A stretch of DNA of 33,966 nt from Vitrella brassicaformis CCMP3155 (Eukaryota > Protista > Chromerida): positions 1 to 33,966 of the forward strand of contig CDMY01000667.1 of the NCBI GenBank assembly GCA_001179505.1, given 5' to 3'. The notes below the pieces were generated by a model. It saw only the letters and a program-made list of their open reading frames with translations, was not told the DNA's origin and made no database searches. How positions within the stretch are numbered: position 1 is the first letter of the stretch; every line of letters starts with the position of its first letter. Positions 5,841 to 33,966 of the stretch are shown here, piece by piece. Position numbers and translations under genes: made by a program.

Positions 5841-8055
5841 TCATGGGGCATGCAGGGGGTCCGTTTGGTGGTGTGAAGGGTGCAATTGGCACTTCACTCC
5901 CCTGTTCGGTCCGAGCGAACTCACCATAGGCGAAGAATTAGCTCGACAACACGTGAACAGGATACACACAACACCGACAACGTCCCAGAGTCTTCTCCCG
6001 GACCATTCCCCGGCCAACGGGCCAGCCACCCACCGACCTACCCAGCACTGCACCCCTGCTCAGCGCTACACACTGTCCTGACTGTGCAGTCAATACATGC
6101 AGGGTTAAAATGTCAAAAGCTGAACATGTTCCAGCCCCCCACATGTGCCTCGGTGGCCAGCACGAGCGACTCCGCGGTGAGGGATGGGTGTGAAGTCACC
6201 GTTTGCCGTATCTGGTTCAGCTCATCAGGAGCCACGAAATAATCGGGGATCTCCAGCTGCAGCAAATAACAACAATGGCAGATAGACACCATGAGCAAAC
6301 GATACGCAGCAGGAGATGTTGGCAATGCTAGCCAACCTGTGTGAGGCTGGTGCACGAGTTGATGATGAACATGACGTCGGTGGCGACCATGAAGACCCCT
6401 GAAAGTACATAGCGAGAGCGGGGCGAACACTGTGCCTGCGACATGGGTCTCCATGTGCTTGTCTTCTTTGTCTGTCTGTCTGTCTGTCTGTCTGTCACAA
6501 CCCACCTTTGAGTATGAGTTTCTTGAGGCTGGTTCGCGTGCCGAAGAGCTCGAAGACCACGTGGCTGGGGAGAAAGTAACCCTACAGCGGCCAGCACAGT
6601 CAACAGGGAGTCCATGTGAGTGAGAGATGGGGTGCATGCACACGAGCTGACGCACCTTCTGCAGCAGGCTGCATGCGGCGGGCTGCTGCCCCGAGTACTC
6701 AAACGTAAACTCCTCCAACTGATCACCTATCGTCAGGAAAAAGCCCTGACACCAGGCAGGCGAAAGCAGTACACTCATTTTGCGGCACGTCGATGGCAGG
6801 TCTCTGTTTCGTCAGCTTACGATGATGCCATCATAGCTCCACGTCAAGTACGGAAGGTTGGCGGTCTTGACGTGACACCGCAATATCGACTGCACATTAA
6901 CACACGCCACACACAGAGAGGCGGGATCCAGCACTCGTCTGGTTGTGGTTCATCATCCGGCAGAGAGACAGACAGACAGACAGACCGACGCCCACCTCAT
7001 TGCTCTTCCTGGGCACTCGCTGCACCATGGCTGTCGAAAATACGTCCATGGCGTAATCAAACCTGCCGAGCAACACGTATGCTTGAATGGCCGTGCCTTA
7101 CATCCATCTGGCCATACCTGAAGGTCGTCAGCTGCGTGAACTGCATGACCGAAGCTATGAGCGACTCGCATGACGCGAATGGCGTGGTGGGGTTCCACTC
7201 ATACAAACGGCGATCACCGCTACCTGCACACCAACCCAGCGTTACCAGGCCCACGTCCCTCCCCCCTCCCGTCTCACCTGTAGCGATGGAGAAGCTCCTC
7301 ATGTTGGTGGCGAGCACCAGGGAGCTCTCGAAGGCCCGGACGCTATCGGCACTGAGGAGTCCCTGGAAGCCTATACTAAGGGGCTCCAGGTACAGACACA
7401 CCAGGGTGCCCATGAGACAGTCGTGGCCTTCCAAGGGCTCCCCGCCGATGCGGTTGAGTGCCCGGTCGCTGAGCAAACCCACATAGTGCAGCGACTGCAG
7501 CACGGGTGCGTGCAGCCGCTCCATGATGATGCGGTTGAGGACGCACTGATTGGTCGTGAAGCCCTCGAGGTGCAGCCGTCGGAGGTTGGGGAAGACAAGC
7601 ACGGCAGGGGGGGCCTGGGGCGCCATGTCGAGGCCTACGGTGGGGTTGCGGTTGAGCTCCAGGTGGGTGAGGGACTCCGCCAGCCCCGCCGTGCGCTCGA
7701 GCATGCCGATGAAACTCCTGGCCGATGCGATGGACCGCTCTCGCACTGTGAGGGCCGACCAGAATTCGGGGTTGTTGCATACGTCCCTGAAGCACCTGCA
7801 CAGCCGCCGCAGCCGCTGCAGGTCCTGACGCGCCAGATACTTGAGGATGTGGAACACCAGAACTGGACACGTGCATCCACAGACACAGCAATACATTCAT
7901 ACGACAAGCTAGAGCAGAGCGACCCAGAAACATCATGTGTTTGTGCGTTTGTGTTATTTACCTTCATCCATTTCCCACTCGGGCAGCGTCATGGCGCTGA
8001 ACCGCACCATCTGAATCTCCACGGGGTGCCGGCGAGTCCCACGTCGAGACTGCAT
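5841..8055 (-). CDS. F-box protein with downstream LRR-like repeats (multi-exon)
   Basis: Exon 1 from the ATG at 8055 splices in phase to give TLPEWEMDEVLVFHILKYLARQDLQRLRRLCRCFRDVCNNPEFW, which fits the F-box consensus. It is followed by LTHLEL, FPNLRRLHLEGF, PVLQSLHY and LTTFRY LRR-like segments. The 3' end is approximate. Confidence 0.75.
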
Positions 8056-8312: not shown

Positions 8313-9963
8313 ATGGCTCATTCGTCGAGTCCTGTTCCCAGCGCCCGAACAGAGGCGTTTCAGACCGCTGTTGGGCCTGAACATCAAGCAGACCGCATCG
8401 TCGCCGTGCTCAAGGTCAGGACAAACTGCGACTCAACACGAGACTGAAAAGGGCTACATGATGGCATGACGCTCTACATTGGATGGTGTTTTCTTCTGTG
8501 TCTCGACATCAGTCGTGGGATCGTCAGGGTGACGGCAAATTCACACTGGAAGAAGTCGCGCTGGCCGCCAAGCAGCTCCACGGGTATGTATGCACCATGC
8601 GGAGGCTCAGTCAGCCTCGCTGCATCTTCTCTCCCTGGATGGCCTGCCTGCCACTGTGTGTGTGTCAGTGAGCGGCAGAAGAACAAGAGCTACCGGGTGG
8701 CCATCATCGCGCTCGTCTGCCTCTGGGTCGTCACACTCGCCGCTGTCCTGGCACTCGTCATCGCCGGCGTACAACGTGAGCCAGTGGGACGCAGAACGAT
8801 CGAGGGAGGGAGTTTCTCTGTGTGCGTTTGTGTATGCGTGTGTGTCAGTGATGAAGGAGGAGACGGTCCAGGAGGGCATCGGGATGTCCGTCAAAGACGG
8901 CGCACCCGTCCGTAAGTGACAGCCCATCCACCCCCTCACCTAACGGACCGTGGCTCTTTGCTCATTTGTGTGTGGCGTGGGGTGGCTTGGTGGATGTGTG
9001 ATGTGCGCAGGCGTCCAGTCTCACGTCGACACGTGGTCGATTCCCGATATGTATGCGTTCGACCTCGAGCCCTTCGAGAAGATACACTCAATATCCCTCC
9101 AGGTGACTCACCCACCACCACCTACTACACACACACCTCCCAGACTCTCTGAACGTGTTCGTGATCTACGTATGTGTGTGTATGGCCCTCATCCATCCAT
9201 CCATCCAACATCTGTCAGCTCAATGAGGAGGACCAGGCTTTGTTCAACGTGGATTACGTCATCAAGCGTGCCAACCACACCGAGGTCTATCTATCCGGCG
9301 GGCCAAAGCTCGTCGTCAAGAGGGGTGAGACACACGAGCAGGTCACATGGACGCGATGCGTCAAGCCAAGCAACGATCCCATGTGGTGTACGGTTGCTTA
9401 ACGATGCCCATCAGACGAGGCGATAGTGTACGATAAGGACGGCAACGTGCTGCGTACGCTCGAGTATGAGGGTTACCACGACTACGAAAACCAGGAGGAG
9501 CGCCGGCGGCTGCAGCCAAGAGGGTTCTCCCCGCGCAGGGCACCAGAGCTCGGCGGCAAGGGGCGAGCAGTCGCCTGGTGTAACCCTTACAGATGCGGCG
9601 CCGTAGGAGGTCAGCAAACAACCACCTGGCCCACGCGGCACGAACCAGACAGACCAACACAGAGACAGACAGACAGACAGACACTTGAGCACGACCCCAG
9701 AACGCCTAACTGGCCACCTATCTGCGTGTGCATGTGTGTCACTCAGCCAATGTGGAGATCTACAACCCTCGTCGTTACTACTGGTACGCCCGAATCGATC
9801 AATCCGAGACGATCATACAACATTTGTGTGTGATGTACAAACGTCCGTGTGTGTGGCATTCAGGGCTACTGGGACGGCCGGTCGTACGTTCCAGCCCAGG
9901 GGGCCCCCCACGAAGCGCTTCCCGCAAGGATTTCCCATCGGCTACGATACGGGCGGATACTGA
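8313..9963 (+). CDS. Single-pass membrane protein with an N-terminal EF-hand-like loop (8 exons)
   Basis: All predicted junctions are phase-consistent. The product contains DRQGDGKFTLEE (EF-hand-like loop), a basic KNKSYR, the TM helix VAIIALVCLWVVTLAAVLALVIAGV, then KEETVQEGIGMSVKDGAPV, an EERRRL motif and the stop after GYDTGGY at 9963. Confidence 0.75.
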
Positions 9964-11287: not shown

Positions 11288-13072
11288 TCAGGTGCCCATG
11301 TCCTCTTCAAGTTCGTCCTCGTCGTCGTCTCTACCGCCCTTCTTGTCCTTCTTGGCGGCGATGCCCAGCAAGGCGGCCCGCTCCTCATCTCGCTCACGCA
11401 TGGCCGCCTCCTCCGCCTCATCGTCGTCATCGATGCCCTGACCCGCCGATCCACCTACGCCCTTCTCCGCACTGCTGGCATAGGCCACAGAGAAGTCCAC
11501 CGATGACCAGTCGCGCCACATGCCGTCGACGGGGTCGTTGCTCGACGTCACCTGACGCACCTCCACAGGATTGCCCTCTGATATAAAACCCTGCACAGAC
11601 GGATGGATGGATGGAAGACACACGTGCGGACATGAGAGTGCGTGTGTGTGTTCGGCTCCCCCCTCTCTCCCGTCCCTTGTTTACTTGTCTGATCCACTCC
11701 ATGATGCTCTCGGATGTGAACGGGCCGTAGAGCTGCCCGCTGTCCGGTACTGAGGGGGTGGCAGATGACGCGGATGGCTGCGCTGCTCCGGGCGCGGAAG
11801 GCTTCTTCCACCTGATGATTGATTGATTTGATTGAAAGCAACCATGGAATCGGGGTCATGCAGGTACTTTGCCCGAGTGTGCGCCTTTTACCTGTATTGC
11901 CAATAGAGCAGCTCGCGGTCCTCAGATGAGCCGACAGGCCCACCACCTACAAGCACCACCACGAGATCAAAGGCAAACCACAAAAGCACCAGACATGGTG
12001 GTTGGGTCAGGCAGCGGTGGGTGTGATAGATGATGAACATGAAGGGCTTTATGTACCTGCCGCTGGTCTCCTCTGCCCACGTCCCTGGCTGTGCTTCTTG
12101 AGCGCCTCCTCGATCTCCTCACGGGTCATGAAATACGCATCTGATGATCCACACACAACCATCATACACACTTTAGTCCCTTCGTTCCTCACTTTTCTGC
12201 CTGTCTGTCTGTCTGTCTGCCTGTGTGGCTCCCTACTGCTTCCTTCGGCCATGAGCCCATCGCAGAGCTCCGTCACGCGGTTGAAGGTGGCTACCTCCTC
12301 GTCGGTCATCCGGTGCTCCTTGCCGCCCTCCCTCTCCGTGCTGCCCCTCCCACCCTTCTTGTTGCGCCCCTTGACGATCCCTGGAATCCCGCCCCCGCCA
12401 CCTTTCGTGGTCTCCCCGCCGGCCTTGATGCGTCTGAGGGCTGCGGTGGGTGTCTCACCCGGTTGCAGCACCTGTATGAGGGCGGCGAGGGATGTGGGTA
12501 CGTCCACCTGGATGACCTCTGCGTCACGATTCATACGCTGCATCACCGCCCGCCGCTCATCGTCGTTCTAGCAGTGAATGGTACGATGAATGAATGCATA
12601 CCATCGGGTGTGGTGCATAGTGTTTGCCTACCTTGAATGTGGTCGATGCGGCGCCTCCATCGACGGAGTCGAGCCACGAGTCCTTGAAGTCCTCCTCCTG
12701 CTTCTTGCGGTCGACGAAGAGGAAGTTGCCCTCCTCGTCGATGTTGCCCTCCTCCATCTCCTGACGCATGTTGAACGGCTCAAACTTGACGCCCTCCTCA
12801 TTCACCTGCAAACACGCACACAGAGCACACCCACATGATGCGGTGCTCTGTGTGGGCTGTTCTGCGTCTGGCTGACTGACTTGCACATCAGGGTCCGCCT
12901 CCTCGAGGTTGCCGGTGGTATCCAGCTCGTCGGTTACGACGCCGGCGGCCTTTTGCTTCTTCCGAGATCTTATCTCATCGACAGTGTCCCTGTCAAACTG
13001 CCAATCCAGCTCCGCCCCGTCATCACCTTTGAGATCTCGCTCAATGTCGGCCCCGCGCTTGCCGCTAGACAT
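11288..13072 (-). CDS. CD2BP2: CD2BP2 / U5-52K / Lin1 homologue (U5 snRNP-associated GYF-domain protein)
   Basis: Conserved blocks EPFNMRQEMEEGNIDEEGNF, DSWLDSV, LQPGETPTAALRRI, FNRVTELCDGLMAEG.NAYFMTRE. The spliced C-terminal GYF domain reads YWQYRW...LYGPFTSESIMEWIRQGFI...WRDWSSVDF. Splice phases are consistent. Confidence 0.9.
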
Positions 13073-13193: not shown

Positions 13194-16100
13194 ATGCTGA
13201 CGACTTTCGGTCCTCCCAAGCAGTACTGCTTCGGCCACCGCGAGCCCATCCAGAGCCTCAGTGTGTCGCCATGCGGCCGCTACCTCGCCGCCATTTCCCC
13301 GTCGTCGGTGGCTCTGTGGAGCAACGAACAACACCGGGTGCTGCTGTCCTTCACCAAGCGCGAGACAACCCAGACGAGCGCCGACACGCAGTCGTCAAAA
13401 GCCGACATCTTCGGGTCTCATCACATGGCCGTGTGGTCGCCGTCTTCGTCTCACCTGTTCGTGTCGACGGTACCGGGCCGCAGCTTGTGCGTCTATCGCA
13501 TCTTGGCGACCCGCAGGGGCCATGAGGGAGAGGGGGATGAGTCGGAGGGGCTGCTGGATGCGGCGGATGAGACTACCCCCCGTTTCCAGTCGCGGCCGTA
13601 CATGGTGGTGCAGCAGCCGCCCACCCATTGCGGCACGCGCATCGAGCTGCACATGGTGCTCAATCTGCCCGTGTTGGTCAGCTGGATGGCCGCTAGCCCA
13701 CGCTATCTCATCGCCGCTTGCCGCAAGCAGCCAGCCATCTTCCTCCTGGACTACTCCGACTGTCGCTCTCTCAGCCACATCGTATACCTCACCCCATTCC
13801 TCACCGACACCGCCCTGGGCGCCACAACCCCACACCCACACCACGGTGGGCATCATGACCCCACTGTGGGCGGCACACCCACTCCTGCCGCCAACGTGAC
13901 GCCTTCCAGCACCACCCGGTCGGCCTTCAGGCCCTTTGACCCACCGGCGCACGGCGAGGCGCTGTATGATCCGGATGGCGCTGAGTGTCTCAAGAGGCAC
14001 CTGGAGAACGTCCAGCAGAGCCGCACCACACCCATGCTCAAGAGCGACGTCGAGGCGTACCCCCCGCCCTTCGGCTCGCCCCTCCCCTTCTCGACTGCAC
14101 CACCGCAGGCAGACCAGGACCACCCCCCCACCAATGGGTTGCCATCGCACCCCAAGGGCCATAGAAGGTCGTCTTACGGCGGTGAGGCCGTCGCGTCGCC
14201 ACCGACGGGCATCCACCACATCAGTGTCGACACGCGGCTGGACTTGGTGGGGGTGGTCCTCAACAGCGGGGCGGCGATGGTGTTTGCGTGGAAGAAGCCC
14301 TTCCTCTACCCAGGCAGGCGGCGAAACAATGACGACTGGCGAGCGGCGCTGCTCAGAGGGGGCAAGGGCGGGCTGGGTGTCATTGTGAGGGCTACTGGCG
14401 CCACTCAAATCGAGTTCAACGCCGCCCAGAACATGATGGCCGTGGCGCTCGCCAGCGGCGTGGTGGAATTGATCGACATTCCCAAACTGCGGGAGTGCAC
14501 CCTTGAGCGGGCGACGTCAGGGCGTGATACTACCCCGCCCCCCACGTCGTTGCCGGCGTATGTGGTGCGTCAGCTGAATGTGGCCGAGGCGATAGGGCTG
14601 GACGTGCAAGTGAGCGAGATGGGCGGCGTGGTGACCATGCAGTGGTCCAGTGACGGCAGGGCACTCGTGGTGGGCTATCGCAGGGTGGGATGGGCTATCT
14701 TCTCATACCTTGGTACAGACAGACAGACAGACAGGCAGACAGACAGACAATGAGAAGGACGCCTACAGCCAGGATTCCTGGGTGCTTATTTCGGTCCGTC
14801 TGTGTGTGTGCAGGCAAGCCCCTGGCGGCCCCGTTCCGCCGCCCCGAGGGCAAGGGCCCTTCGGCCCCCTTCCCCTCATCGCAGAGGGCTTCCCCAGCGT
14901 CCTACCTCCAATACACCCGGCGCACGTCGTACGCCTACTCGTTCCCGTATGGCTATGCCACTCCCGAACTGCAGCCCTCCCCGCCCCCGGCACATGCCAT
15001 GGGCACCCCCAGCGCGGCCGTCCTGCCGCCCCTCAGCCAGAGCGCATCGGCCACGCCCACTCACGGGGGCAGCGCATACCACCGGGCCATATCCACTCAG
15101 TCCATCCTGAGCAGCTGGTCGCGGGGCGTCCAGGGGCGCGCACTGTGCTGGGGCAGCCACGGCATGGCCGTCCTGGTGGCCTACCAGGGCGAGGACGGCG
15201 TCCTCTATGAGTTCGACATCTTCCGGAGCGCCGACTGGGCGCCACTCGTGTCACTGTCGCCGCAGGCGTTCGTCATTGGGCATGGGCAGCGGCAGAAGAG
15301 GGGGCTGGCGGAGGGGTGGAGCGCCAAGAGGACCTATGCACCCATCCCGCCGCAGTCGCTGTCTGGGGCATGCTGCTCTGCCGACCTCAACCACATGTGA
15401 GAACTTCACCACATAACGCTTGTTCTGCACGTACATCCATATGCGTGGATTTATTGTACTTGCACCGCATTGTGTTGTATGTACGTGTTGATATGAATGC
15501 AATGGATGCAGGGTGCTGGTCGGTCCCCACCGCTTCCTGGTGTGCGAGGCGCTGCCGTGGGAGCCGTCCCACCCCCAGTGGACGTCCATCCCCCTCCCAC
15601 CCGCACTGTACACCTGCCCCAACTGGCCCCTACAACTCGCCGCCATCAGCCCCGACGCTGACTGGTTCCTCGCCGCTGGCAGACGGGGCGCCGCGGTCTA
15701 CCACATGAAGACCAGAAGATGGCAGCTATTCGGCAATGTCCAGCACGAGGCCGCCCTCAAAACCATCGGCCTGGCCTGGTACGACTCCCGGACATTCTTC
15801 CTCACCTACGCGCAAGACTCGTCGACAGCCGCTGAGATGCAGCGGGGCGCGTCATCGGGCGACGTCAGCGCGCCGCAGACCCCGGCGGCCAACCCCCCCT
15901 CCCCATCTGCCACTGCCCCCGTGACGTACTCGATTGTCTTTCTAGACCCGTCGCTGCGTCTGGACCTGGACCTTGCAGTGGCCAAGATAGAGGACCTCCA
16001 CTACATGCCGCTGCGCGTGGCCCTGCTCGACCCCACACACCGACTGGTGCCCTCAATGAACCTCAGCAAACGCCTCGGCGGCGGGTCGGCGCGGCGGCAG

Positions 16101-19100
16101 TCCGCAACCGGCAGCAGCGCCCCACCACGCGGTCCCCTGTTGCCGAGGCTCCCGAGGGACGATGAGAGCGCCTCCCCCGTGTCTCGACGGACTCCCCTGC
16201 TGGCCGTCTATGACGAGAATTACGAGGTGACGGCCTACCGGCTGATGGCCTTCGCAGACTCTGTCACATCCGATTGGCTGGGCGGTGGGCTGTCGCGTGC
16301 CAAGACCAGGAGCCTGACGGTGGCGACGCTCTGGAAGGTGGACTTCAAGGCCCTCATGTGGATCGACCACCCGCTGAGCGTGCGGTTCCTGGTGGACCAA
16401 AACCACTTCCTCATCCATCATGCGGGCGGCGATGTCACGGTCGTTCATCTGCGGGTGGGGGTGGGCCAGGGCGATGGCGAGCCGGACGAAGACGACGAAG
16501 GAGGTGAGAAGGCCCTCACAAAACCGCACTTTGTTCCCAGTATCTGTTTCTGCTCTGACTGGTTCAGGTGTCGCGACAGGGCCTCTGTGCATTCCGGAGG
16601 AGTCGGCCCCTCTGGTGCGTGACGTCGACTCTCTCTGGACCGGCCCGGCCGGCCAGCTGCCAGAGTTCTGCCCCCTGCCTTTCCGCCAGCGCCGGTCCCC
16701 CTCACCGCCGGCGACCCGTAACAACAACAGTAACAGCAGGCCCCCTGCATCCCCAGCCCCACCTGCCCAGGATGACGTCGGCACACCCCTTCGTCTGGCG
16801 GCCATCTCGCTGCCTGCCAAACAGGACAACCAAGACAGTGACCTCTCACCGTCCATTGCCCCAGACACGCCGTCTTCACGGGTGGAAGTGGCTGCTGCCC
16901 AGCCGAAAGCAGCGGCAGCACCACCGGCATCAATTGACAACAGCAACAAGCCTCCTGTTGCGGGCACGAGTGTCGCCGGTGGTGGTCGCGTCAATATGAC
17001 TGAGGCGAGGAGGATCCAGTTGGACCACCAGGACAGCATCGATGGTCTCCTGCAGCCGTCTGGGTCGTCGATCAGTCTGGGTGGCAGCAGTGGGCCGGAG
17101 GGTTTTGTGCCGCGGCGAGTGGAGAAGTTTGGTGGCTGGGTGGCGGAGATCGTCCCCGATGACATTGCTGCAGGCGAGACGGAACTCGACTACAACACTA
17201 TCACAGGTGCGCTCGGGACCTGCCCGTTCATAATAACTGAATGAATGCATCGTCTATCCGTCCATCCTCTGCCTGTCGCCTGTGTGCCATGCAGTTTATT
17301 CGACGCAAGAGGAGGGCATCAACAGGACTGTGCAGCGGTACACTCTCATGCCTCTGCCACAGCCGGGCGTCGTCACGCTCTCGTCCAAAGCATCACCCCC
17401 ACCCTCATCGGTCTCACGCTCGCAAGGTGGTGCCCCCCACCACCATCCCCAGTCGTGGTGGTTTCCCTCCCTGGGCCTCTCGAAGCCCAAACCGGACGCA
17501 TCCACGGACCTGTCCGACCGGGAGAGCAGCAGCGTGCCGCCCCCGTCACCGTCGCCAACACCGCCCCCGTCACGGGCGCAGCTGACGGCCGTGAGTAGTG
17601 AGACGGACGGTGGGACGGCAGTTGCAGAAGATGACAATAACGAGACGGGGACGGGTCGCAAGGGCTCAGTGGACAGGAAGGGCGGTCAGTGGCAGGTGGA
17701 GCCGCGAGGAGAGGAAGCCACGGGGGGCAAGAGGTGCGACGAGAGCAACAGGCGAGGCAGCATCGTGGAAGCCATCAAAGCCAAGGGCACCAACGCACAA
17801 CCGAGTCCATCCTTCTTCGCTCTCCAACGGTAAAGACACGATGCATACTAGCTACACCACTCCTCCGTGCGACCAGTTCCCATTTCTCCCCACCCATTCC
17901 ATCCTATGTTGCCGGTGCATTTATTTCTGGTGTGCACAGTCGCGGCATCAGTGGGTCCGATTTGGGTCTGCTGTACAGCGACTTGCGTTACGGGTCGGCC
18001 GACAGGGGCACCGTGGCGGGCGGCATACACGACGTCAAGTACTACGAGAAGCAGGCCGAGGACTACCGCACGCTGCTCAGGTCCCAGCACCAGCGCATGA
18101 AAGAGCAGTACGACACGCAACACAGGAGCCACGAGCTGCAAGGTCACTGAGGGGTGAAAGGTTTGGCTTGCTCCATTCCGTCCATCACGCATCTCTCTGT
18201 GTGTCTGATTAGGCCCCCAAGCCGACCTCGACACGTGTCGTGGCGGCATTTACGTGTGGTGCCAGAATACAGAGGGGCTGCAGCTCATCACCGTGGCCGC
18301 CAGCATGAGGAACAAAAAGCCTGCAGCTGGTGGCCAGCAGGGCCACGATGACAGCGCTGCACCGACACCACCACCAGCAACAGATGATGGTGTGAGGGAC
18401 TCGGTGGATCCGCTGGAGTATCGGACAGCCTCGCTGCTGCCCATCGACCAGAGGCCGCATCCCGTCAAGCTGCTCGCCGTGCTGCCACAGGTGTGTAAGC
18501 TGTATGCAAGGGTGGCTGTAGATCGGTTCATCTGTCTGTGTGTCTGTCTGTCTGTCCATCTGGGCGTCTGTGTTGTCTAAAGGTTGGTGTGCTGCTGGCG
18601 TGTTCGCCGGCCAACACGTTTCCCACGTCGCCCACTGCAGTGCCATCGACGTCGCTGCAGCTGCAGTTCCAGCCCTTCCTGCACCCACTCCTCAAAGTCT
18701 TCCTCGCCACCGCACCGCCACTGGTGTGTATACACAGATAGACAGACATGACCGCTTCGGCACCGCATTGACGCTGTCTGCCCGTGTTGGCCAACCATCG
18801 CCTCTCTCTCTGTCTGTGCCTGTCCTGTCAGGCCAGCACAGTGGAAGTGCCGTCGCCATCCTTCCAGGTGGCCGAGCGGCTGCTGGGCTTCCTCGAACCC
18901 ACCAACGCATTCAAGCCGACGCTCGAGCTCCTCTTCCACGACATCCTCGAGGAGGCCATACCAATATACTCATCCCACCACCGCAAGACGCAGACACGCA
19001 TACAAACCACACTGGCATTCCCCCAGCAACAGCAGCAGCAGCAGGAGCGGGATGCCGCACCCGACAGTTCTCCCCGCCGGTCGGTGTCATCTCATGTGAT

Positions 19101-22441: not shown

Positions 22442-24368
22442 ATGCGTCTTGTCGCTGTGGTCCTCGTTCTGATAGGCCTCTCGTCGGCGGAGTATCTATG
22501 TCCACCCCTTCCCCATGCAACCAACACCGGGCGCCCTCACAAGGCGTCCTTCCTGAGCACAGAGTGGGCCCTGCACCAGAACACCTTCACCTGCAACACA
22601 ACAGACGACGGTCAGGCACAACAGACTACCGTGAGTTTTCATGGCGGTCTGTCACCCGAGCAGGCGATGAGGCGTTTGTGCCCAAGACCGGCCTTTGCCG
22701 CAGCCAAGGTGCAGACACCGAAGCTCCCGCTCGCGTTTGTCTGACAAATAGCCCCCTTCTCGGAGCTGACGATGATGACGATTACCGACGCCTGAACTCG
22801 GCGACGGATAAGACCGCCTGCGAGAAACGTCGGTGCTGTTTCCAGAGGCGTCCAGTTGACAACGAGCAGTGTTTCTTCTCGCGTGAGAAACCAAATGACA
22901 GAAGTACTCGGGATTCCGATGCTTTCTCTCGATTTTCAGAGTGCCCGCCCTTTCTCCAGCAACAGAACAACAAGGGGCTGACGTATCCTCGAGACCTCGC
23001 CCTGACGTGTCCAGACAGGCATGATTTGTTTTCTCCACTGTGTACAATAATCCTTTGTGTGTGTGTTTGGCGCAATGTGAGGAAGGTGAAGGGCGGGTTT
23101 GTTGATCTACTGTCACCTCTCGTCAAGGTTCCCTTCTGGCGGGTGCCGAAATTCCCTTCTCGACCGCCACAGCCCATCAAAGACACGGGCGACAGACGAG
23201 TTATCCACTTCGGCCCCCATCTCAAGCGCCTGCCTGGATTCATCGACAAGAAGGAGGGGTCGGGGGGGTCTGATACCCGGTGTGACAGATCCCTAATCTC
23301 GGATGAGTTGACGTCTGGGACGAGTAATGAAGAGTTGGATGCAGTTGTAGTGCGATTTCCATGGCTTGTCAAAACCAAGGCGCGGCATCATTCCTTCTCC
23401 CAAACGATTCACGCTCGTAACAAGAAGGATGATGACGATGATCGTGACGATGACCGTGACGATGACCATAACCTTCGAGACTTGCGAGAGGTCTAATATA
23501 ACGTACCAAAGAGCTCAGATGTTCACCAGGTCTCATTATCTGATCAGGTCTTGAAGCATAAGTTGAGAGGCAAGAATTCCGCCAATACGTACGTTGTGGA
23601 CTTTGAGTGGGAGATATTCGTTCCGCCCCCACCACACAACACTCAGGAGGTGAGCTATACTAAACCAGTGGCGCTGACATCACGTCCTCTCGTTGTTTCG
23701 TCAGTTTGTGGATTCTGTGATCTTCGGTATTAATTATGGGGTTGAGAGGAAATACTGACTTGATATTCTGTGTGCTGCAGGGCTCAACGGCCGGGAGTGT
23801 TGCACAGGTGAGACAATTTTCTTCTGATGAAACTCTTTCGCATTTGTGTGTCGTTATCTTTTCTCAGGGACGTGTCCAACGACTGGGTTTTTTCCGCCTT
23901 TGGACGGATTCAGTGTATTCTACAAGGAGCTGTCTGCATCTGTTCCAGACCCCTACCCATCTGTCAATGTTGCTAAGTGCTGGTATGTCACCGAGAGCCC
24001 CATTTGACACAGATGTACTCATGGTCGGTCTCCCTTTGCGCAGCGAAGACTGGGACAGCTTCACATTCAACCAAGAGCAATATGGCAAGGGTCGCCGGTA
24101 AGAGTTTTCCGAACACAAACCCGCGATAATTTACTGTGTCTAGTCATTGTCATTGCCTCTGTCTGTATGTCCCCACGAAAGGTTTTTTTGGGTTGGCGTC
24201 ATTGGCAACAAGAGCGGAAAGGTGGAGGTCAGAGGCAGGGCGTACAAGCGTCGGTTCGACGAGGAGTCTATCTTCTTCTCCTGCTCGTCGTTCGGGGCTC
24301 CGGCCAACAATGCCACATGTCCGGCCTTTGAGGCGCCGCCAGATTTTAATCCGGACGATTTCAATTAA
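22442..24368 (+). CDS. Gene A: secreted Cys-rich protein with a trefoil (P-type)-like module, 10 exons
   Basis: Signal peptide MRLVAVVLVLIGLSSA. Exons 22442-22610, 22664-22882, 22940-23018, ~23082-23490, 23548-23649, 23705-23726, 23781-23807, 23868-23982, 24044-24097 and 24182-24368. The Cys pattern is C...RVC...C-x4-CCF-x9-CFF, with Asp-rich tracts. It is collinear with gene B throughout. Confidence 0.8.
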
Positions 24369-25030: not shown

Positions 25031-25996
25031 GCCCGCCGCCATCTCACGAAAGCCTGAAACTGTCGGGATTGCTACGATGCTCGCTGTTTCGTATGTCTGT
25101 CGACCCTTTCAGCGAGCGGGTCTTGGGTGGATACAAGAGGTCTTGTTGTCGAGTGTGAGTCTAAGGTGCAGAATCAATCAAGATGGATGTCCGCACACAC
25201 ACGGGGATGCTGGGAAGGACTGTCGAATGCTTATTCAAGCCGCAAACGAAGAAACAAAACAATACAGAAGTCACGCCGAGACGATACTCGCATTTATATG
25301 AGCGACTGACTGATAGAAAGAGTCCCACACACCCAATGGAAGGAGGATATCAAATGAACTGAACGATGAAGGTCTACAACGTCCAACCACACACATCATC
25401 AGTAGAGGAGAGGGGAAAGGAGGGAGGGAGGGAGGGGGGGGGCAGGGGAGAGACAGGCTGCCTACCTGTGTACACAGATGCGAGACAGACTCGTATACGC
25501 ACCATACATCGCACGTCGCCTCCCCCGGACCGAGGGAAGTATACAAGCCGGGCCCGCCCCCCCGCGCCATCGGGGTGACACGTCACGACACATCGACCTC
25601 CAGAAAGAACCAGGCATTTTTTCCGGAATCCAGGGGTGTCAAGGGAAACCTTGGTGTGCCGGACATCCATCCGTGCCTCGTTTTCCCATTTCTGTTGGAT
25701 GCGTCTCTTTCCCCCTTTTTTTTCCTTTCCGGTTCTCTTCTGTGTCCTGATGATCTGATGTTGATGATCTAGATCAGCACAAGTCGACTTAACTACGGGA
25801 ACAGTGGAACTCGACTGAATGAACGAAGGCGTGTAGGTCCGTTATGCAGTGCCGGTCATGCAGCCCAGCTGCCATGACCAATGGGCGCTGTAGCGTTAAC
25901 AAGGCAGGGAACTGCCCCTGCCAAACTCGCTGACGACCGGCAAAACAACCAACACGGCGCCTGAAAACCACTGCATAAAACATTGGGCATGCACCC

Positions 25997-26064
25997 ACAG
26001 CCAGACAGCCAGACAGCCAGGCAGCCAGCCAGCCAGCCAGACAGACAGACAGAAAGACAGACAG
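25997..26064. repeat. Compound (GCCA)n/(GACA)n microsatellite
   Basis: CAGCCAGACAGCCAGACAGCCAGGCAGCCAGCCAGCCAGCCAGACAGACAGACAG... Confidence 0.9.
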
Positions 26065-26487
26065 CACGTATGTGTGTCGGGACACTAGTGTCTTGTCCGA
26101 CTCCGCACCAGGGAGTGTTGTGAAGAGCACCCAAATCAAAAGAGCGACACGACAGAGGCGTGCACGAACAACCTGCCAGCACAACGCCCACACACATGCC
26201 AGCCAACCAGTCAGTGTGCGTACGCAGATGGCCCCATATCTGTCTCAACGCGCACTGCAACGACAAAGCAGCCAGGTGGCGGGTGCGTTAAAGCCGGCAT
26301 TTTCATGACGTCCTAAGCCTAGGCTGCCTAGGGCGCCCGCTTCCCCCTTTCTTTGGAAAAGTAAACAGACCGCACAGAAAGGCTGCTCCAGGTGAGACCA
26401 TCTGTCCAGTCCATCGTCTGTCGCCACATCCCCCTGCCGTCCGTTCCTGCCGTCCTTTCCTGTCCTGTTGTCGCTGCCGCAGGCAAG

Positions 26488-28498
26488 ATGCATCTCGTGG
26501 CGGTGGTCCTCATCGGCCTCATAGGCCTCACGTCGGCGGCCGTCCCCTGCATGAACGCCACTATCCGCCGGCGCCTTTCGCGTCCCCATGGCTCCGCGGT
26601 GTCCTTCCTCGATTCATCGCATCAGAGCGGCCTCACTTTCAGCACAACAGATGGTGGGCCACACACGAAAGATGACCATATTTTCCTGCCCGTATCCTCT
26701 CACGCGAGCAGACGATGACGACACTCGCAAGCATCGGCGCGAATACGACCTGTGTAGCAAAGAAGGCACAGACACCCATCGAGTCTGTCTCACCGATTCC
26801 CCCCTCTATGGCGGCCATGATGACGATGACGATGACGATGACGGTTACCGCCTACGCACGAAAAAGTGGCCGCTACGCACGAAAAAGTGGCCGCTGAATT
26901 GGAGGGCTACGCAATTTTGCGAGGAGCGCGACTGCTGCTTCGAGGGGCATCCAGTCGACGGGGAGAGATGCTTCTTCTCGCGTGAGTAAATAGAGATGGG
27001 TCGAACACAACACACATCGCACACACGCACTTGCAGGGTGCCCGCCTTTTCTGGAGCAACAACACGTCAAAGGACTGACGGACCCTGAGGGTGTGACACT
27101 CACCTGTCCCGAGAGGCATGTATTTTGACGAATTGTCCTTTACAGACCATGCGCACGCGCGCGTGTGTGTGTATGTGTGTGTGTGTGGCGCACGCAGCGT
27201 GAGGAAGGTGAAGGGTGGGTTTCACGATTTACTGACGCCTTTGATCAAGAAGAGACATCCTCCGACACCCCCGGAGCCCATTACATATGACAAGGGCGAC
27301 TGGCGCACTATTCACTTCCATCCGAAGCTGAAGCGGCTGCCTGGGTACGTCAATAAGAATACCGAAGAGCTTGGCCACTACGGCAACTCAATATGTGGCA
27401 CCGATGGCACCGGTGGGTGGGTGGGTGAAGCGTGCCTGCAGAGACAGCACTATTTCATGACGGACCCGCTATTCTCCTTTGCAGATAGAACGTTTTCCAC
27501 GCACAATGACGACTTGGATGTGGTTGTGGTGCGAGTGGCCCAATTAGTGGAGACCAAACAAAGGCGTCGACGTCGTCATTATTACGCCCAAACGATCTCA
27601 AGCGACGACCATGACGACGATTACTATCGACACAAGGACCGTGATGACGACGACGATCACCGTCGACCCATTTTCGAGGTCTCTTCAAAAGAGGGTGTTC
27701 AGGTGTTCGGCCATAGTGCTATTTGTCTGTTTCCCAGGTTCACAAGAAGGATCTCCGCCCATATGGTCCTTATGTGATTGACTTCGAGGTGGAGATATAC
27801 GTCAACCGCAGCGACCCGTACAACGACCATGACGTGAGAAGCAGCGACGCAACTGGGCTTACGCGTGTATCTTTCCCTCTTCTCTGTCGTTGCTTTTTAG
27901 TTCGCTGACCACGTGACCTACGGTATGGTCTTGGCTACAGTGAGGTGGTTAGAAGGAGGTGAACCGTGTGCATTCGATTTGTGGTGCAGGGTGGAACAAC
28001 CAAGAGTGCTGTACAGGTACAGGTAGTGAACTCCCTTGCATTTGTTATGCGTTTCTTGTGCGTCTGACTCTTGTAACTAGGGAACTGCCCCGCAACAACA
28101 TACCTTCAGGGACAAGATGGCGGCAGTGTCTACTACCACAAGCTAGAAGCGGGGGTGATAGCAGGTGACTGGGCAACCGTCAATCTTGCCAGCTGCTGGT
28201 AAGCACATCGGTATTCCCCTCCACCGCTCGGCATGTCTCTTGCCTTGATCCTTGCAGCGAGGATTACAACAACTACAGATTCGTCCAGGACGAATATGGC
28301 AAGGCCGCGCTCTTTTTGTGGATCGGTGTGATTGGTAACAAGAAGGGCAGACTGGAGGTGCGCAGCAGGGCGTACAAGCGCATGGCCGACCAAAACAGCA
28401 TCTTTTTCGTTTGTTCAACGACCGCGCCTGCCGAGTGGGAAACCGGGCCCCCGTGCGCCGAGTTCAACCGATCAGCGATAGATTGGCCCCCGCATTAG
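26488..28498 (+). CDS. Gene B: tandem paralogue of gene A (secreted, trefoil-like, Asp/His-rich), 10 exons
   Basis: Signal peptide MHLVAVVLIGLIGLTSA. Exons 26488-26653, 26712-26981, 27037-27115, 27198-27412, 27485-27678, 27738-27833, 27901-27922, 27990-28016, 28081-28198 and 28258-28498. Blocks shared with A include CCF..PVD.E.CFFS.CPPFL, KVKGGF.DLL.PL, IHF.P.LKRLPG, ECCTG.CP, CCED, YGK...F.W.GVIGNK.G..EVR.RAYKR and SIFF.CS. Confidence 0.8.
26852..26895 (+). repeat. In-frame 21-bp tandem duplication (LRTKKWP x2)
   Basis: CTACGCACGAAAAAGTGGCCG x2 within exon 2 of gene B; absent from gene A. Confidence 0.9.
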
Positions 28499-28901
28499 GT
28501 CGGACGGCGTCCTACGGCTCATAGGTTTCAGGCACTGGCCCTCCCCCCCGATTCTTCTTTGTGTCTCGAGCTGCCCGCCCGAAGAGGGTGCCTGCCAATC
28601 GTGTTGTACTGTCTTACGGCTTGCGACCTTAGGAACAACTTTGTTGTTCTGAAAAAATGAGACGCGCGGGCGAGACACGAACACACAAAGAGATCTTGAA
28701 AAGTGGGCGTCTCGTAAAACTCCTAGGAACCCCGCCTCTAAAGGTTTTCTATTAGGCGTTTTGTCTCGGTCAATATGATCTTCACGCCGAGGGGACGCCA
28801 TCTGTTCCTCTCAGGATATTACTTAGTGAACATCTAAATCGGTCAATGCAAAGCAATGGACAAGCACGCGGGAACAAAGTAGAAAAAGTATTGAATCAAT
28901 T

Positions 28902-29073
28902 CACTGCATCAATGCGGACAACCCTCTTCGGTTGCTTCGCTTGGAAGACGGCCGTGGTCCTGGCCTAGCTGGCCACGAGTGTCTCAGATCACCCATACAT
29001 GGTCACCATAGCCGCCGACGGTTTGTCCGCCGGACAAACCGACGGGAGAGGGTACGTGTAAATGTATTTGTAC
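28902..29073 (+). repeat. Left terminal/subterminal arm of the outer element
   Basis: Inverted copy of 32557-32773: a 78-bp block at 79% identity, then ATGGTC..AGCCG, a palindrome, CGGGA(G)AGGG and an exact GTATTTGTAC (29064-29073). Confidence 0.8.
29015..29045. other. Palindrome/hairpin in the left arm
   Basis: CCG-A-CGGTTTGTCCG-C-CGGACAAACCG-A-CGG: an 11-bp perfect stem with a 1-nt centre, plus 3 bp beyond one mismatch. Confidence 0.9.
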
Positions 29074-29083
29074 ACGTTGCGAG

Positions 29084-29465
29084 GTTTTTCTGTTGCTGGA
29101 GAAAGGGCGGGCACTCTGAAAATCGAGAGAAAGCATCGGAATCCCGAGTACTTCTGTCATTTGGTTTCTCACGCGAGAAGAAACACTGCTCGTTGTCAAC
29201 TGGATGGCTCTGGAAACAGCACCGACGTTTCTCGCAGGCGGTCTCATCCGTCGCCGAGTTCAGGCGTCGGTAGTCGTCATCACCATCAGCTCCGAGAAGG
29301 GAGCTATTTGTCAGACAAACGCGAGCGGGAGCTTCGGTGTCTGCACCTTGGCTGCGGCAAAGGCCGGTCTTTGGCACCAACGCCTCATCCTATGCTCGGG
29401 TGAGAGACCGCCACATGGTAGTCTGTTGTGCCTGACCGTCGTCTGTTGTGTTGCAGGTGAAGGTG
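29084..29465 (-). pseudogene. Captured inverted fragment of gene A, part 1 (copy of 22582-22971)
   Basis: Hand alignment gives 15 substitutions over 382 nt plus an 8-nt intronic deletion (~96%). Both introns are retained. The intron-1 acceptor CAG|GC is changed to CATAG|GA, which would give TGA if used. There is no start codon or signal peptide. Confidence 0.95.
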
Positions 29466-32092
29466 AACACGTTATCACGTCTGGGTTCTTTCGTGTGATG
29501 TGACCATCCACCCCCTCCCCCTTTCCCCCACCCCCTGTCCACCCTGAGTGCCTCGTACGTACGGTTCGTCTGTGTGATATGGGGTCAGTTTGGGTGAGTT
29601 TTCACGATTTTTCTTCGATGTTGTGCCTTGGTCTGCTCCCGCTCCCTGTCTGTCACCGCATATCCCGAGACTAATAGCCGTTGCGGTTTGCTGCATGACG
29701 ATCCTCTCTACAGTGCCTCGTACGCCAACAGGCGACCGTTCGCACAGACTTCCTTTCGTGCAGCCTTTGACTTGATCGACGTATGAGCGGCTGTAAAGCA
29801 CGTCCACAGATAGATACACGTGAATCGGACTTTTTCTCAAGTGTCAGACTTGCGTGTCATATTATTTTCAACCATCAGACTTTTCATGTTTGCACAATGG
29901 ACACGAGGAGACGAGCCGGCTGAGCATTTATGGCTACAAATGGACAACTGCACTGGTGAGAACAAGAACCAGTACATATTCGCCTACGCCAGTCTACCTG
30001 TCCATCTTGGCGCCTTCAAAGAGGTGACTAGGCGTGCAGCACGCTTCCACATCGGTCGTCACGAACCATGGCCGCACTCTGTGCCTGCTGTGTGCAATGA
30101 CAGGTCACGGTGAACTTCTTACCTGTGGGCCACACGCACGAGGACATTGACCAGCTGCACTCTGTCACCTCCAAGACACTGAGAGGTACGCTGTCTGGCC
30201 TTTCTGGCGGACGCCAACACAGGTTGGTGTGTTGTGCTGTTGTGTTCTATATGTAGTTTCTCGATTTGCTACGGCAACTCAGCTGAGGGAGCTCATATTG
30301 GGTGCTCATCGCAATCCCAAGTACCCGAACGGTATGCAGGTGCGGTTCATGACGCAGACATGGGATTGGAAGGCATTGCTGGAGCCGCACACTGATCCCC
30401 CGGTCAATTTCTGCACGGCACAGTCGTATCGATTTGCACGGGTACGCCAAATCTGTATGTGCGCACACCGGACACACCCTGAGGCTCCATCGTGCACTGC
30501 ATGTGCTTGCTGCAGTTGCCCCCGTCATACGAGCACGTGGGCATGTACTTCAAGTCTCTCATAGCCGACAGAGATTGGAAAGGTATCTCACAATAGACAC
30601 GATATGCGCTGCCCACTGCCTTCCTCTGGCTCTGTGTTTGCTGCAGGTCCCCTTCCATTCATGAAGTCATATCCACCAGCCGGCAGCGGTGCGTCAGTCG
30701 CAGCAACAGAGGACCTCCTCAATCCAGGTGCCAACAGCAGGCGCGATCCTGATCGTATGAACAAGACTGTAAGCGAATCGGATGGCTACAGGGAAGAAAA
30801 GTGTACAGACTTGATGTCTTGGTAAATGATCATTACTGCAGATGTCCGCCACGTTGGCCGCGCTTGACAAGCTTCCCGATCAGCTTCGTTACAGAGACCA
30901 GACGCCTATGTTCACACGCGAGGATGTCAGCTTCTGCAAGGACTTGATCACGGGCAACTACGAGAAGGAGAACACCCCTTTCCGTCTGCCGGCCAAGATG
31001 CATGACTCATCATTTGCCGCTGACAGCCTGTTCACATCCACGGCAAGCGGACACAATGCACATAGTCAAAGGCCAATGGCAACAAATCATGTTCCCGCTT
31101 TCTGTCGTTGTCAGTCATCTTTGTACAAGATCGACAGTGGTGCCAGGACCATCGATTCTGGCATGTTGGCGTCAGTTTTCGACCGACTCGGACTCAAGTG
31201 CCAGTCAGTTTCTGTCGGAGATCCGACTGGCGTATCCACTGCTGATCAGCGCACACTGGCTATGTGGGAGAGCCGAGCAGAGGATCCGCAGAAAGGGGAC
31301 ATGGTTCTGATCGACCCAGGTAAGGAAGGAAAGACAGCCACACAAACAGGCAGACAGACAGACAGACAGACAGAAAGCACAGCTGTGTCCTGCGGATGTC
31401 TTCTCGTTTCACAGACCGCGAGGACATGGCGGATGGAGACGCAAGTCCGGCATGGGTCGGGCAATTCATTGAGGACGCCGAGTCAGCGGGTGATGGACTC
31501 CCTCTCGCGAGCATTTGGTGGTATGAGGGGAGAGGACCTCTCAATGGCTGGTCGCCAAAGGGACACTTTGAGCCGGCGATGCGCGTCGCGCCGTCAAAGT
31601 GAGTGAGCCACTGCAACGAATCGGATGTCTGGCATCCGATGTGGTTTGTGTGTGCGTTTGTATGTCATGCAGGTCAAAGCGTAGGAAACAGGTGACCGCT
31701 GAGCCGTGGCGTCAGTCAATCCCCAAAGGCAGCATACTGCTTGCTGGGTATCAGCTCACCAAGAACAATCGGCTACCTAGTGTTGTCAGAGAGTTTGTTT
31801 TTCGGCTGAGAGAGATGGAGGCGTTGAATGAGGAGAACCTGCCAGACGGCAAGGACGATTGTGTAGATTGTGTAGAGGAAGAGGATGCTGTATAGCTCCG
31901 TGTGTGTGGGTGGGTTGGTGGTGGGTGGGTGGGTATGTATGTGTGTGGGTTGTGAGTAAGGGAGACGGAGGGTTGATGAGATGGATGGATTGATAGACAC
32001 ACACATGGTGCATTCAATCGATTGGCGTGTCCATTATGCAAACAAGCAAGTCTGATACTTGAGAATTAGTCCAATTCACGTGATAACGTGTT
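29466..32092 (+). mobile_element. 2627-bp TIR DNA transposon, Sola-like, probably internally deleted
   Basis: Perfect 15-bp TIRs AACACGTTATCACGT (29466-29480) and ACGTGATAACGTGTT (32078-32092). The 4-bp TSD GGTG lies at 29462-29465 and 32093-32096. The empty site is the single CACC at 22582-22585 of gene A. Confidence 0.9.
29879..31895 (+). CDS. Spliced C-terminal half of a Sola-like / DUF7869-type DD(D/E) transposase (5' truncated)
   Basis: Phase-consistent exons give LWLQMDNCTGENKNQYIFAYASLPVHLGAFKEVTVNFLPVGHTHEDIDQLHS, QTWDWKALLEPH, YRFAR, VGMYFK...DWK, KGDMVLIDP..PAWVG..IWWY and EPWRQSIPKGSILLAGYQLTKNNRLP. Only ~400 bp lie between the left TIR and these exons. Confidence 0.8.
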
Positions 32093-32132
32093 GGTGTTCT
32101 GGTGCAGGCATTCTGTGCTCAGGAAGGACGCC
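32093..32132 (-). pseudogene. Captured inverted fragment of gene A, part 2 (copy of 22543-22585)
   Basis: The reverse complement GGCGTCCTTCCTGAGCACAGA-ATG-CCTGCACCAGAACACC matches gene A except for a 3-nt gap and one substitution. Confidence 0.95.
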
Positions 32133-32153
32133 GTTTCGTTTCGTAAAGGCTGA

Positions 32154-32172
32154 GACATGCGCTGCGCATGTC
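32154..32172. other. 19-nt palindrome
   Basis: GACATGCGC-T-GCGCATGTC, 21 bp from the end of the captured fragment. Confidence 0.85.
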
Positions 32173-32556
32173 AACGACGCATGGCTGAATCTGGTGTATA
32201 ACACAGACTCAAGACTGAAGAATGTGCGCAGCGTATCGCCGGCCGACCGAACGGGAGAAATCAAGACGACTCCACTGTGCTATTTTCGTTGGTCGGTCAA
32301 TGTCACAAAGTAAAGCATGTGTCTCCCGATGGATTGTCAACGAAAGCGGTTTGCATCGTCTCTTGCTTGCCTCATCCTTTCCTTCACACGATCATGCCGT
32401 GGTGCAACAGAAATGTTTGAGCTTGGAATGTGCGTGTTGGACGTGTGTAGTGGGAGACATCTTACAACCAATGTTCTTGTGTTTAGCCAGCATGGGATGC
32501 TCCATGAACTTTTCCAAGACACACTCATGATGTGCTCTGGAATGAAAGTAATGAAA

Positions 32557-32773
32557 GTACAAATACCGCCCTTCCCGCCCCAATGTCGGTTCGACAGGCT
32601 GTCGGGCCGACATTGGGGCGGGCCATCCATTGCCTCACTCAAAGGTCGGCTGGATGGACCATACATAGGTGTAATGACCTACGACCCACCCTCATCTCGT
32701 GGCCAGCCTGGCCAGGATTACGGCCATCTCTCGCGGGAAGCAACATAGGAGGGTTGTCTGTAGTGATGCAGTG
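32557..32773 (-). repeat. Right terminal/subterminal arm of the outer element
   Basis: Inverted counterpart of 28902-29073; contains a 49-nt palindrome and TGGCCAG-C-CTGGCCA (32700-32714). Confidence 0.8.
32574..32622. other. 49-nt near-perfect palindrome/hairpin in the right arm
   Basis: CCCGCCCCAATGTCGG-TT-CGACAG-G-CTGTCG-GG-CCGACATTGGGGCGGG: 16 + 6 Watson-Crick pairs, 2 T:G pairs and a 1-nt centre. Confidence 0.95.
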
Positions 32774-33966
32774 ATTAGCTGAATCAATGAATGAATTGAA
32801 TGACAATGACCCATCATTGATTGACTCATTGCTTGACTGACAAGCACACACTCGTGTGACTCGACTGGCGCCGCATCACTGCAGAATGGCAAGGTGATCC
32901 GTTCGTTTCTTGCAGCCGGCCGATCAAATCCCATTGCAAACTTACTATCCTGACACTCATATGAGAACACAAAACAGCAGCAGAGTTACCATACGAGCGC
33001 ACGCAGAAGTCCGTTTCTAATGAGAGCGAATTACGTCATTGACCCAGGTTTTTTGCGGCAAAATTAAAACCATTGTGACATAAACATTGCTGCACTCACC
33101 ACGAGAGTGCCTCGTGGGGCTGTGGCATGTGGTAATTGTGGGATGTCTAGATTCATCATACCGGTGAAGACGAGTAAAGTTGCCGGCCCAAGCTGATACG
33201 GTTGCGGCCTCAGTGAGGGGTGACTCCGCCTCGAGGCCTCGAACACATTCAGCAGTTCCTCATCTACAACCCTCCCTTTCAAGGCGAGGCCCCCCGGTGG
33301 CCATGAGATCATCATGGAATGGTGGTGGTGGTGGTTAAGGGTAAGATTTATGGAATGGTGTGTCAGCAAGTCACCTTCGTCCGACTCGCCCGCTTCATGT
33401 ATTCTACTTAAGCACTCCCTTGTTGTTGTGGTGATTTTGTGGCAATTGTGTTCAGCCGGACTCAGAGGAACAGTCTATGTCCCTTGTGCATGATCCGTGA
33501 CGGTGGCCCTTTGGCGAGCATGATGGTGATCCAGGGACACGGCAGATCGGGTCTCTGGTACAATGCAAAGAACAAGAGCGAGATATGCGGTTTCAAGATG
33601 ACTACGAGGCATCACATCTCTCTGAGCAGACGTGTCTCGTGAGAAACCAGCTAAATTCCCTCTTCTCTCGAGTGGGAGAATCTTACCTCGGATTTCACTG
33701 TATAAGCCACGTCAGACATGCACACGTTCCGGACAAAAGTGTTGATTGCGTTTCGGCGTGGAGTTTGAAGGCTCTTGGTTGGTTGAAGCTTTCTTTTGTG
33801 TCCCAACAATCGAGGCTAGATTGGGGCAAATGTCTTGTCAGAATGATATCTCGCGGCGATCAGGGGGAGCCCAGTTGTGTATGTTAGTACGCGTGTGCGA
33901 AATGCTGCCTGCGGTAGATGGATGTCGTCTGAGAGAGAGGCGGACCCCATGGATCCGAGATGCACC

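Follow-up and report, generated by a model that had tools for sequence, protein, structure and literature searches.

The layers of the locus

The 33,966-nucleotide (nt) contig CDMY01000667.1 of the chromerid alga Vitrella brassicaformis CCMP3155 (assembly GCA_001179505.1), hereafter the window, holds an inverted-repeat unit (28902-32773) in which a copied piece of a nearby gene, gene A, is split by a transposon that itself carries a shorter insert. An earlier note on this DNA had described the unit as a Pack-CACTA-like element, with CACTG termini, a 3-bp ATT target duplication and a captured host gene fragment. Here, we report the anatomy of the unit, the order of its layers, and evidence from other copies of its arms that points away from the CACTA assignment. 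All positions are given in window numbering.

Contigs from four runs, two of them genomic and from separate studies, the others a sediment metagenome and an RNA run, were aligned to positions 28300-33400 at a likeness of at least 80%. The aligned material consisted of assembler contigs from public runs, not reads. Single-copy baseline contig depth was about 6 in X4 and about 12 in X3, and Logan contigs were used as an independent check of the assembly order. The features of the unit and of its donor are given below, with the strand where a feature has one.

22543-22971, + strand, gene A donor segment (from within exon 1 through both introns and exon 2 into the start of exon 3)
28899-28901, left ATT, proposed as target duplication (sequence match)
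28902-29016, + strand, left arm, part common to other genomic copies (depth 96/155 against a baseline of 6/12; loose ends at 29014-29016)
29015-29045, left subterminal palindrome (hairpin; -14.7 kcal/mol, z -3.6)
29084-29465, - strand, first part of the gene A fragment (orientation opposite to gene A)
29462-29465, left GGTG copy of the inner element's target duplication (gene A comparison)
29466-32092, + strand, inner transposon (51-nt ends; 5'-truncated DUF7869 transposase-like gene)
29481-29816, third-layer insert in the inner element's left end (336 bp; CACGT on both sides)
29892-31895, + strand, inner-element gene (spliced at 8 introns, of which 31043-31114 is GC-AG; frame open over about 500 amino acids)
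32093-32096, right GGTG copy of the inner element's target duplication (gene A comparison)
32097-32132, - strand, second part of the gene A fragment (orientation opposite to gene A)
32133-32573, internal single-copy DNA (baseline depth; no Pfam match for the open reading frame [ORF] tested)
32574-32622, right subterminal palindrome (hairpin; -28.5 kcal/mol, z -6.8)
32640-32773 (start approximate), - strand, right arm, part common to other genomic copies (32696-32774 pairs with the left arm)
32774-33050 (right end approximate), conserved multi-copy sequence beyond the proposed right terminus (ATT, a (TGAA)n-like tract and about 250 nt)

The termini lie where the earlier note had placed them (ATT|CACTGCATCA…TGATGCAGTG|ATT), with CACTGCATCA at 28902-28911, TGATGCAGTG at 32764-32773 and the right ATT at 32774-32776; exact CACTGCATCA sites occurred window-wide at just these two places. 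Elements of the CACTA/EnSpm (CMC) superfamily have terminal inverted repeats beginning CACTA or CACTG, target duplications of 2-3 bp and subterminal arrays of short repeats. Tips of the form CACTG/CAGTG were present at both ends, five bases being weak evidence alone. The ATT pair by itself is weak evidence of a duplication; the expected frequency of a chance 3-mer match was 0.017 window-wide and 0.03-0.04 in the A/T-rich, microsatellite-like flanks, and the inverted repeat extends 1 nt into the ATT.

The arms at 28901-28979 and 32696-32774 (79 nt) were 80% complementary, and an ungapped 78-nt alignment agreed, which upholds the 79% over 78 bp given earlier. On this alignment, the likeness of the two arms is far above chance. 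Arms of 172 and 217 bp had also been claimed; of these, the first 78 nt are strong and a hairpin lies in each arm, but past 78 nt the likeness is weak (local score of 16 against 9.9 ± 1.8 for shuffled sequence, with 3 of 300 shuffles reaching 16). The left hairpin starts at the point where other copies diverge from the locus, and a GTATTTGTAC motif common to both arms lies beside the hairpins. Repeat searches found one palindrome per arm and no CACTA-style subterminal arrays of short repeats. The sole Rfam match, of the right hairpin to a microRNA family, was below threshold (E value, 0.13; 24 bits, with a gathering score of 90) and was taken as chance.

Without the inner element and one GGTG copy, the unit comprises 3872 - (2627 + 4) = 1241 bp. 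A Pfam scan of this remainder, covering one cargo ORF, found no transposase, the arms and the fragment being non-coding; both the arithmetic and the scan bear out the earlier description of 1241 bp without a transposase. The left flank showed no significant similarity to the right flank in either orientation. A CACTGCATAA pair at 25842/25969 showed nothing related on inspection.

Other copies of the arm family

Contig depth over the arms and over their surroundings was as follows.

Single-copy neighbourhood: X4, about 6; X3, about 12
28813-28983 (left arm): X4, 96; X3, 155
32575-32745 (right arm): X4, 64; X3, 169

In the sediment metagenome and in both of the independent genomic runs, contig depth over the arms was roughly 10 to 25 times the single-copy value, and 5 to 10 distinct contigs of other copies (foreign contigs) covered the right arm. 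This places the arms in a multi-copy, dispersed family, and a mobile-element origin is likely. The part common to the family runs from 28901 to 29014-29016 on the left, as marked by loose ends, and from about 32640 to 32773 on the right. These inner limits are at equivalent positions in the two arms, each beside a hairpin, and the loose ends of other copies remain alike for about 12 nt past 29016.

At the proposed right terminus, other copies did not stop. Depth was flat across 32773/32774 (X4, 267 at 32761 and 272 at 32777; X3, 729 and 671), and the foreign letters C, A and G at 32777, 32778 and 32785, found in 7 to 8 contigs (6 at 32785), made up 88 to 99% of the depth in three DNA data sets. 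The family sequence at this end reads …GCAGTG-ATTCACTGAATGAATG…, and homology continues past the CAGTG and the ATT to take in a conserved ATTCACTGAA(TGAA)n tract and then some 250 repeated bases. To about 33017-33050, the right flank was covered by 6 to 9 foreign contigs with few differences; other letters were seen at 32777-32987, at depths of 57 to 350. Two loose ends after 32796 resembled the window's own continuation. Foreign contigs on the left arm were preceded by the exact reverse complement of the right-flank string ATTCACTGAATGAATG, and the arm start of other copies was preceded by …GAAT, not ATT.

Since other copies stay alike through it, the right-hand ATT appears to be family sequence rather than duplicated target, and the 3-bp ATT duplication proposed earlier is not supported. 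To judge from the copies sampled here, CACTG is not supported as an element terminus, and the true outer boundaries probably lie elsewhere. Copies of a CACTA element end at the tips with unrelated flanks, which was not what we found; with subterminal arrays also lacking, the CACTA assignment is not supported. The earlier note had named, beforehand, different boundaries in other copies and the lack of a 3-bp duplication as the outcome that would tell against it, and this is the picture on the right side. At 32719 and 32726, the family majority differed from the right arm and agreed with the left arm. Given these letters and the 80% likeness of the arms, both arms have diverged and look older than the gene A fragment, which is 96% identical to its source.

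Several further observations concern the family and its flanks. The left flank at 28800-28884 had one extra genomic copy with three differences (28835, 28843 and 28847), which was present in the sediment metagenome as well as in the two genomic runs. Positions 32915-33017 occurred in RNA contigs (depth of about 90) in different surroundings and with the letters of other copies, and some copies of this stretch are therefore transcribed within other transcripts. Scans of viral contigs for the arm pattern and for the family junction gave no match, and the one match to the arm core in a metagenome scan, in a contig of bacterial appearance (L001), was due to chance. Other copies did not turn up in word-based protein searches that used ORFs across the right arm and its flank, and exact look-ups of ORFs around the right junction found nothing on record. 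The sole match of an exhaustive HMMER search (P0001) was a tandem-repeat ORF in an unrelated 1.56-Mb ENA contig with no DNA similarity to the arms and was rejected as spurious.

The copied gene fragment and the inner transposon

Gene A (22442-24100) and gene B (26392-28760) are tandem paralogues, about 75% identical and spaced about 4.1 to 4.2 kb apart. Each has a signal-peptide-like start, a cysteine pattern with a weak Trefoil match (sub-threshold in gene A) and acidic, D-rich tracts. Gene A lies on the + strand from about 22442. The host gene fragment reported earlier in the unit proved to be a copy of gene A. Its two parts (29084-29465 and 32097-32132; 418 nt) matched 22543-22971 in reverse orientation with 96.2% identity over aligned bases and 11 gap columns, against 74 to 77% identity to gene B, far below the gene A match. 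The donor segment lies 6.1 kb upstream on the same strand of DNA.

An RNA contig with gene A letters skipped 46 and 57 bases within the fragment (joints 29389->29436 and 29115->29173). The fragment contains both gene A introns and is therefore a DNA-level copy, not a retrocopy. RNA over the fragment carried gene A letters only, and no RNA with the fragment's own letters was seen in the RNA run; the fragment is silent. GTT forms a microhomology of a few bases at the fragment junction. A paralogous empty site downstream of gene A was not found, the similarity between genes A and B ending at 28380/24250, well before the site. Two JGI transcript assemblies of gene B (L005 and L007) ended at 28896 and 28918, that is, at the left-arm edge or 17 nt inside it, and the repeat arm appears to sit at the 3' end or polyadenylation site of gene B.

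Gene A reads …GAAGGTGTTCTGG… with a single GGTG (22582-22585) and thus preserves the empty site of the inner transposon, which in the fragment is arranged as GGTG-element-GGTG. Because gene A has one GGTG and the fragment two, the inner element inserted after copying and made a 4-bp duplication. The single GGTG of gene A proves the duplication, and the order that had been proposed, gene A piece first and inner element second, is right. The three-layer nest is likewise confirmed, with the inner element in the fragment (GGTG) and the 336-bp insert in the left end of that element (CACGT). With the insert removed, 29466-29480 and the sequence from 29822 onward matched the contiguous right end over 51 nt (about 88%); the insert has no inverted ends of its own.

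The gene of the inner element is expressed and spliced, as seen from an RNA contig with no differences to the window. Two of its exons (E values, 4e-9 and 1e-8) matched Pfam DUF7869 (PF25273) at positions 59-175 of 192, with the motifs DNC..NKN and GHTH.D.D within the match. Inverted ends, a duplication with an empty site and a transposase-like gene are all present, and the inner element is a DUF7869-type cut-and-paste element. It is like other elements of this type in the profile match, the inverted ends and the 4-bp duplication and unlike them in three respects: profile positions 1-58 have no counterpart, the reading frame starts within the terminal repeat, and the interior is at single-copy DNA depth, yet the gene is transcribed and correctly spliced. 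It may represent a transposase gene that was domesticated or has recently been disabled.

A second genomic copy of 29526-29903 links the third-layer insert to inner-element end sequence and has a 42-nt deletion (29663-29704). From this copy, the insert would either predate a duplication of that end or be native to a subfamily. Other copies of the inner element's end start to match at CACGTGAAT (29817), after A-rich sequence ending in GTAT/GTCT and not after AACACGTTAT, and the outermost 10 nt of the inner element may not be common to its family. One microsatellite lies inside an intron of the inner gene (31320-31414); (GACA)n/(CAGC)n microsatellites recur along the whole window, at 6452-6501, 9646-9691, 12181-12238, 14696-14765, 18520-18577, 25986-26091 and 31324-31388.

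Origin of the unit

The reading we favour, tentatively and at a little under even chances, is of an old non-autonomous inverted-repeat unit made of two diverged arms of the dispersed family, into which the fragment was copied in place and the inner transposon then inserted. A 418- to 429-bp piece of gene A, introns included, would have been copied as inverted DNA from 6.1 kb upstream into the interior of the unit, the simplest route being repair synthesis or template switching at a break, with the GTT microhomology at the junction. The DUF7869-type element would next have entered the fragment, duplicating GGTG, and at some point the 336-bp piece would have entered the left end of that element. 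We infer that the arms mark both ends of a single element; two inverted family members 3.7 kb apart, with matching inner edges and hairpins, are unlikely to be independent insertions in a family of a few dozen copies. The fragment itself probably arrived by repair and not by transposition. The cargo at 32233-32574 was at baseline depth and the fragment at about twice that depth (gene A plus the present copy), and the cargo-bearing unit is therefore single-copy. The joint 28901->32777 that an empty, single-ATT site would give was absent from the joints listed in four runs, although absence in contig data is weak evidence. Arrival in place is favoured because of the single-copy cargo, the lack of such a joint, the donor 6.1 kb away and arms that look older than the fragment. 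Some points weigh against this account. CACTG…CAGTG with ATT on both sides is the pattern expected of a CACTA element; the right arm runs into about 250 nt of conserved repeat and the left arm does not, which fits two separate repeats as well as one truncated element; the other copies are known from contig depth, variant letters and loose ends alone; and the left or right placement of foreign contigs is ambiguous because the repeat is inverted.

Separate repeats are the substance of a rival account that we consider unlikely, though the strongest of the alternatives. The locus would hold no single element and instead two copies of a dispersed repeat of roughly 400 nt, facing each other 3.7 kb apart, either both of them separate members or the second a truncated inverted duplicate of the first; arm, (TGAA)n tract and extension would together make up the repeat, and the DNA between would be ordinary intergenic sequence that received the gene A duplication, local and inverted, and the transposon. 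Other copies do part from the locus only at the inner edges of the arms (29014-29016 and about 32640) and not at CACTG, the extension is complete in the right copy, to about 33050, and the left has only about 127 nt, and the interior is single-copy. Yet for two inverted members to lie so close together by chance would be a coincidence, unless they share an origin; both arms cease to resemble the family at equivalent positions, followed in each by a hairpin and the GTATTTGTAC motif; and the 12 nt of likeness past 29016 in the loose ends means that 29016 is not a clear family boundary. A genuine Pack-type non-autonomous CACTA/EnSpm element, movable by a CACTA transposase encoded elsewhere, is improbable. 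It would account for perfect 10-nt tips starting with CACTG, ATT on both sides, the multi-copy arm family and 1241 bp of own sequence that hold a host gene fragment and no transposase, but not for homology that crosses CAGTG into ATTCACTGAA(TGAA)n at steady depth, a right ATT conserved in the family, or an arm start preceded by …GAAT in other copies. An ATT match is, moreover, expected by chance at 2 to 4% locally, no subterminal short-repeat arrays were found, and the cargo is single-copy, with no empty site in four runs. We give the same low standing to a true Pack-type transposon, of a CACTA-like or other cut-and-paste family, whose conserved flank would be a strongly preferred repeated target or part of a co-amplified composite. 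An assembly artefact, with the arms or the gene A fragment misjoined in the reference, is very improbable. Misjoins classically arise from repeats and from paralogous sequence such as the 96% fragment, but independent contigs of 2012-2015 runs covered 28300-28975, 28946-29244, 32015-32603 and 32368-32669 with no difference, Logan contig L006 spanned the left flank, the arm and the hairpin and reached into the fragment, and the window's own letters at 32777/32778 were present at about baseline depth. Contigs that span flank, arm, hairpin and fragment start therefore argue against an artefact. Opposite-strand joints at 28942->32797 and 28979->32738 were not safely interpretable and were left unused.

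In plants, Pack-TYPE elements are recognised by ends common to a cluster of related elements and not to a singleton (PMC8903248), and the model for their origin is capture via neighbouring insertions, after which the outer ends are re-mobilised (PMC8903248, PMC6379663). The present unit has no transposase, a host fragment and ends that are not singletons (three DNA data sets); as to mobilisation, the cargo stood at single-copy depth and the empty-site joint did not appear in four runs. The plant capture model would yield a structure like this unit, but its re-mobilisation step is without support here. Plant Pack-CACTA and Pack-TYPE elements (Catoni et al., PMC6379663; Gisby and Catoni, PMC8903248) share with the unit a transposase-free body bounded by inverted repeats, an intron-containing host fragment, multi-copy arms and CACTG tips. 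They differ in that family copies here run past the CACTG tip, a 3-bp duplication is not credible at the family level, the unit is single-copy with its donor 6 kb away, and the host is a chromerid alga and not a plant. Foldback-type or MITE-like repeats are similar in their long imperfect arms, hairpins near the arm ends, adjoining simple-repeat tract and variable, non-coding interior; unlike them, the present left arm is without the outer extension seen on the right. The fragment itself resembles templated (filler) insertions and short inverted local duplications from double-strand-break repair or template switching, being an inverted DNA copy of about 420 bp from nearby, with microhomology of a few bases and no duplication of its own. 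Its position inside an inverted-repeat unit hints at a transposon-related break. We class the unit not as Pack-CACTA but as a DNA-transposon-like repeat, decayed and nested, that holds a gene fragment copied from nearby.

Pack-type capture of gene fragments is documented in plants, and an alveolate case would extend the known reach of a mechanism credited with driving exon shuffling. If the Pack-type reading were true, it would be DNA-transposon gene-fragment capture outside plants, in a close relative of apicomplexan parasites. The locus shows instead an ordered nest, one proven insertion and one local DNA-level gene copy in a unit that is not demonstrably mobile. A single locus is no basis for the broader statement that transduplication is at work in this genome, and there was no evidence that the cargo-bearing unit moved. 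The locus also serves as a worked example of how CACTG and a 3-bp match can mislead when other family copies are not consulted, and it points to a Vitrella repeat family that deserves genome-wide definition.

Five marine sediment metagenomes from 2023-2025 (X13-X17) contained 6 to 22% of the sampled words of 28600-33100. Contigs from X13 were identical or nearly so to the single-copy interior. From these matches, the alga or a very close relative is present in those sediments.

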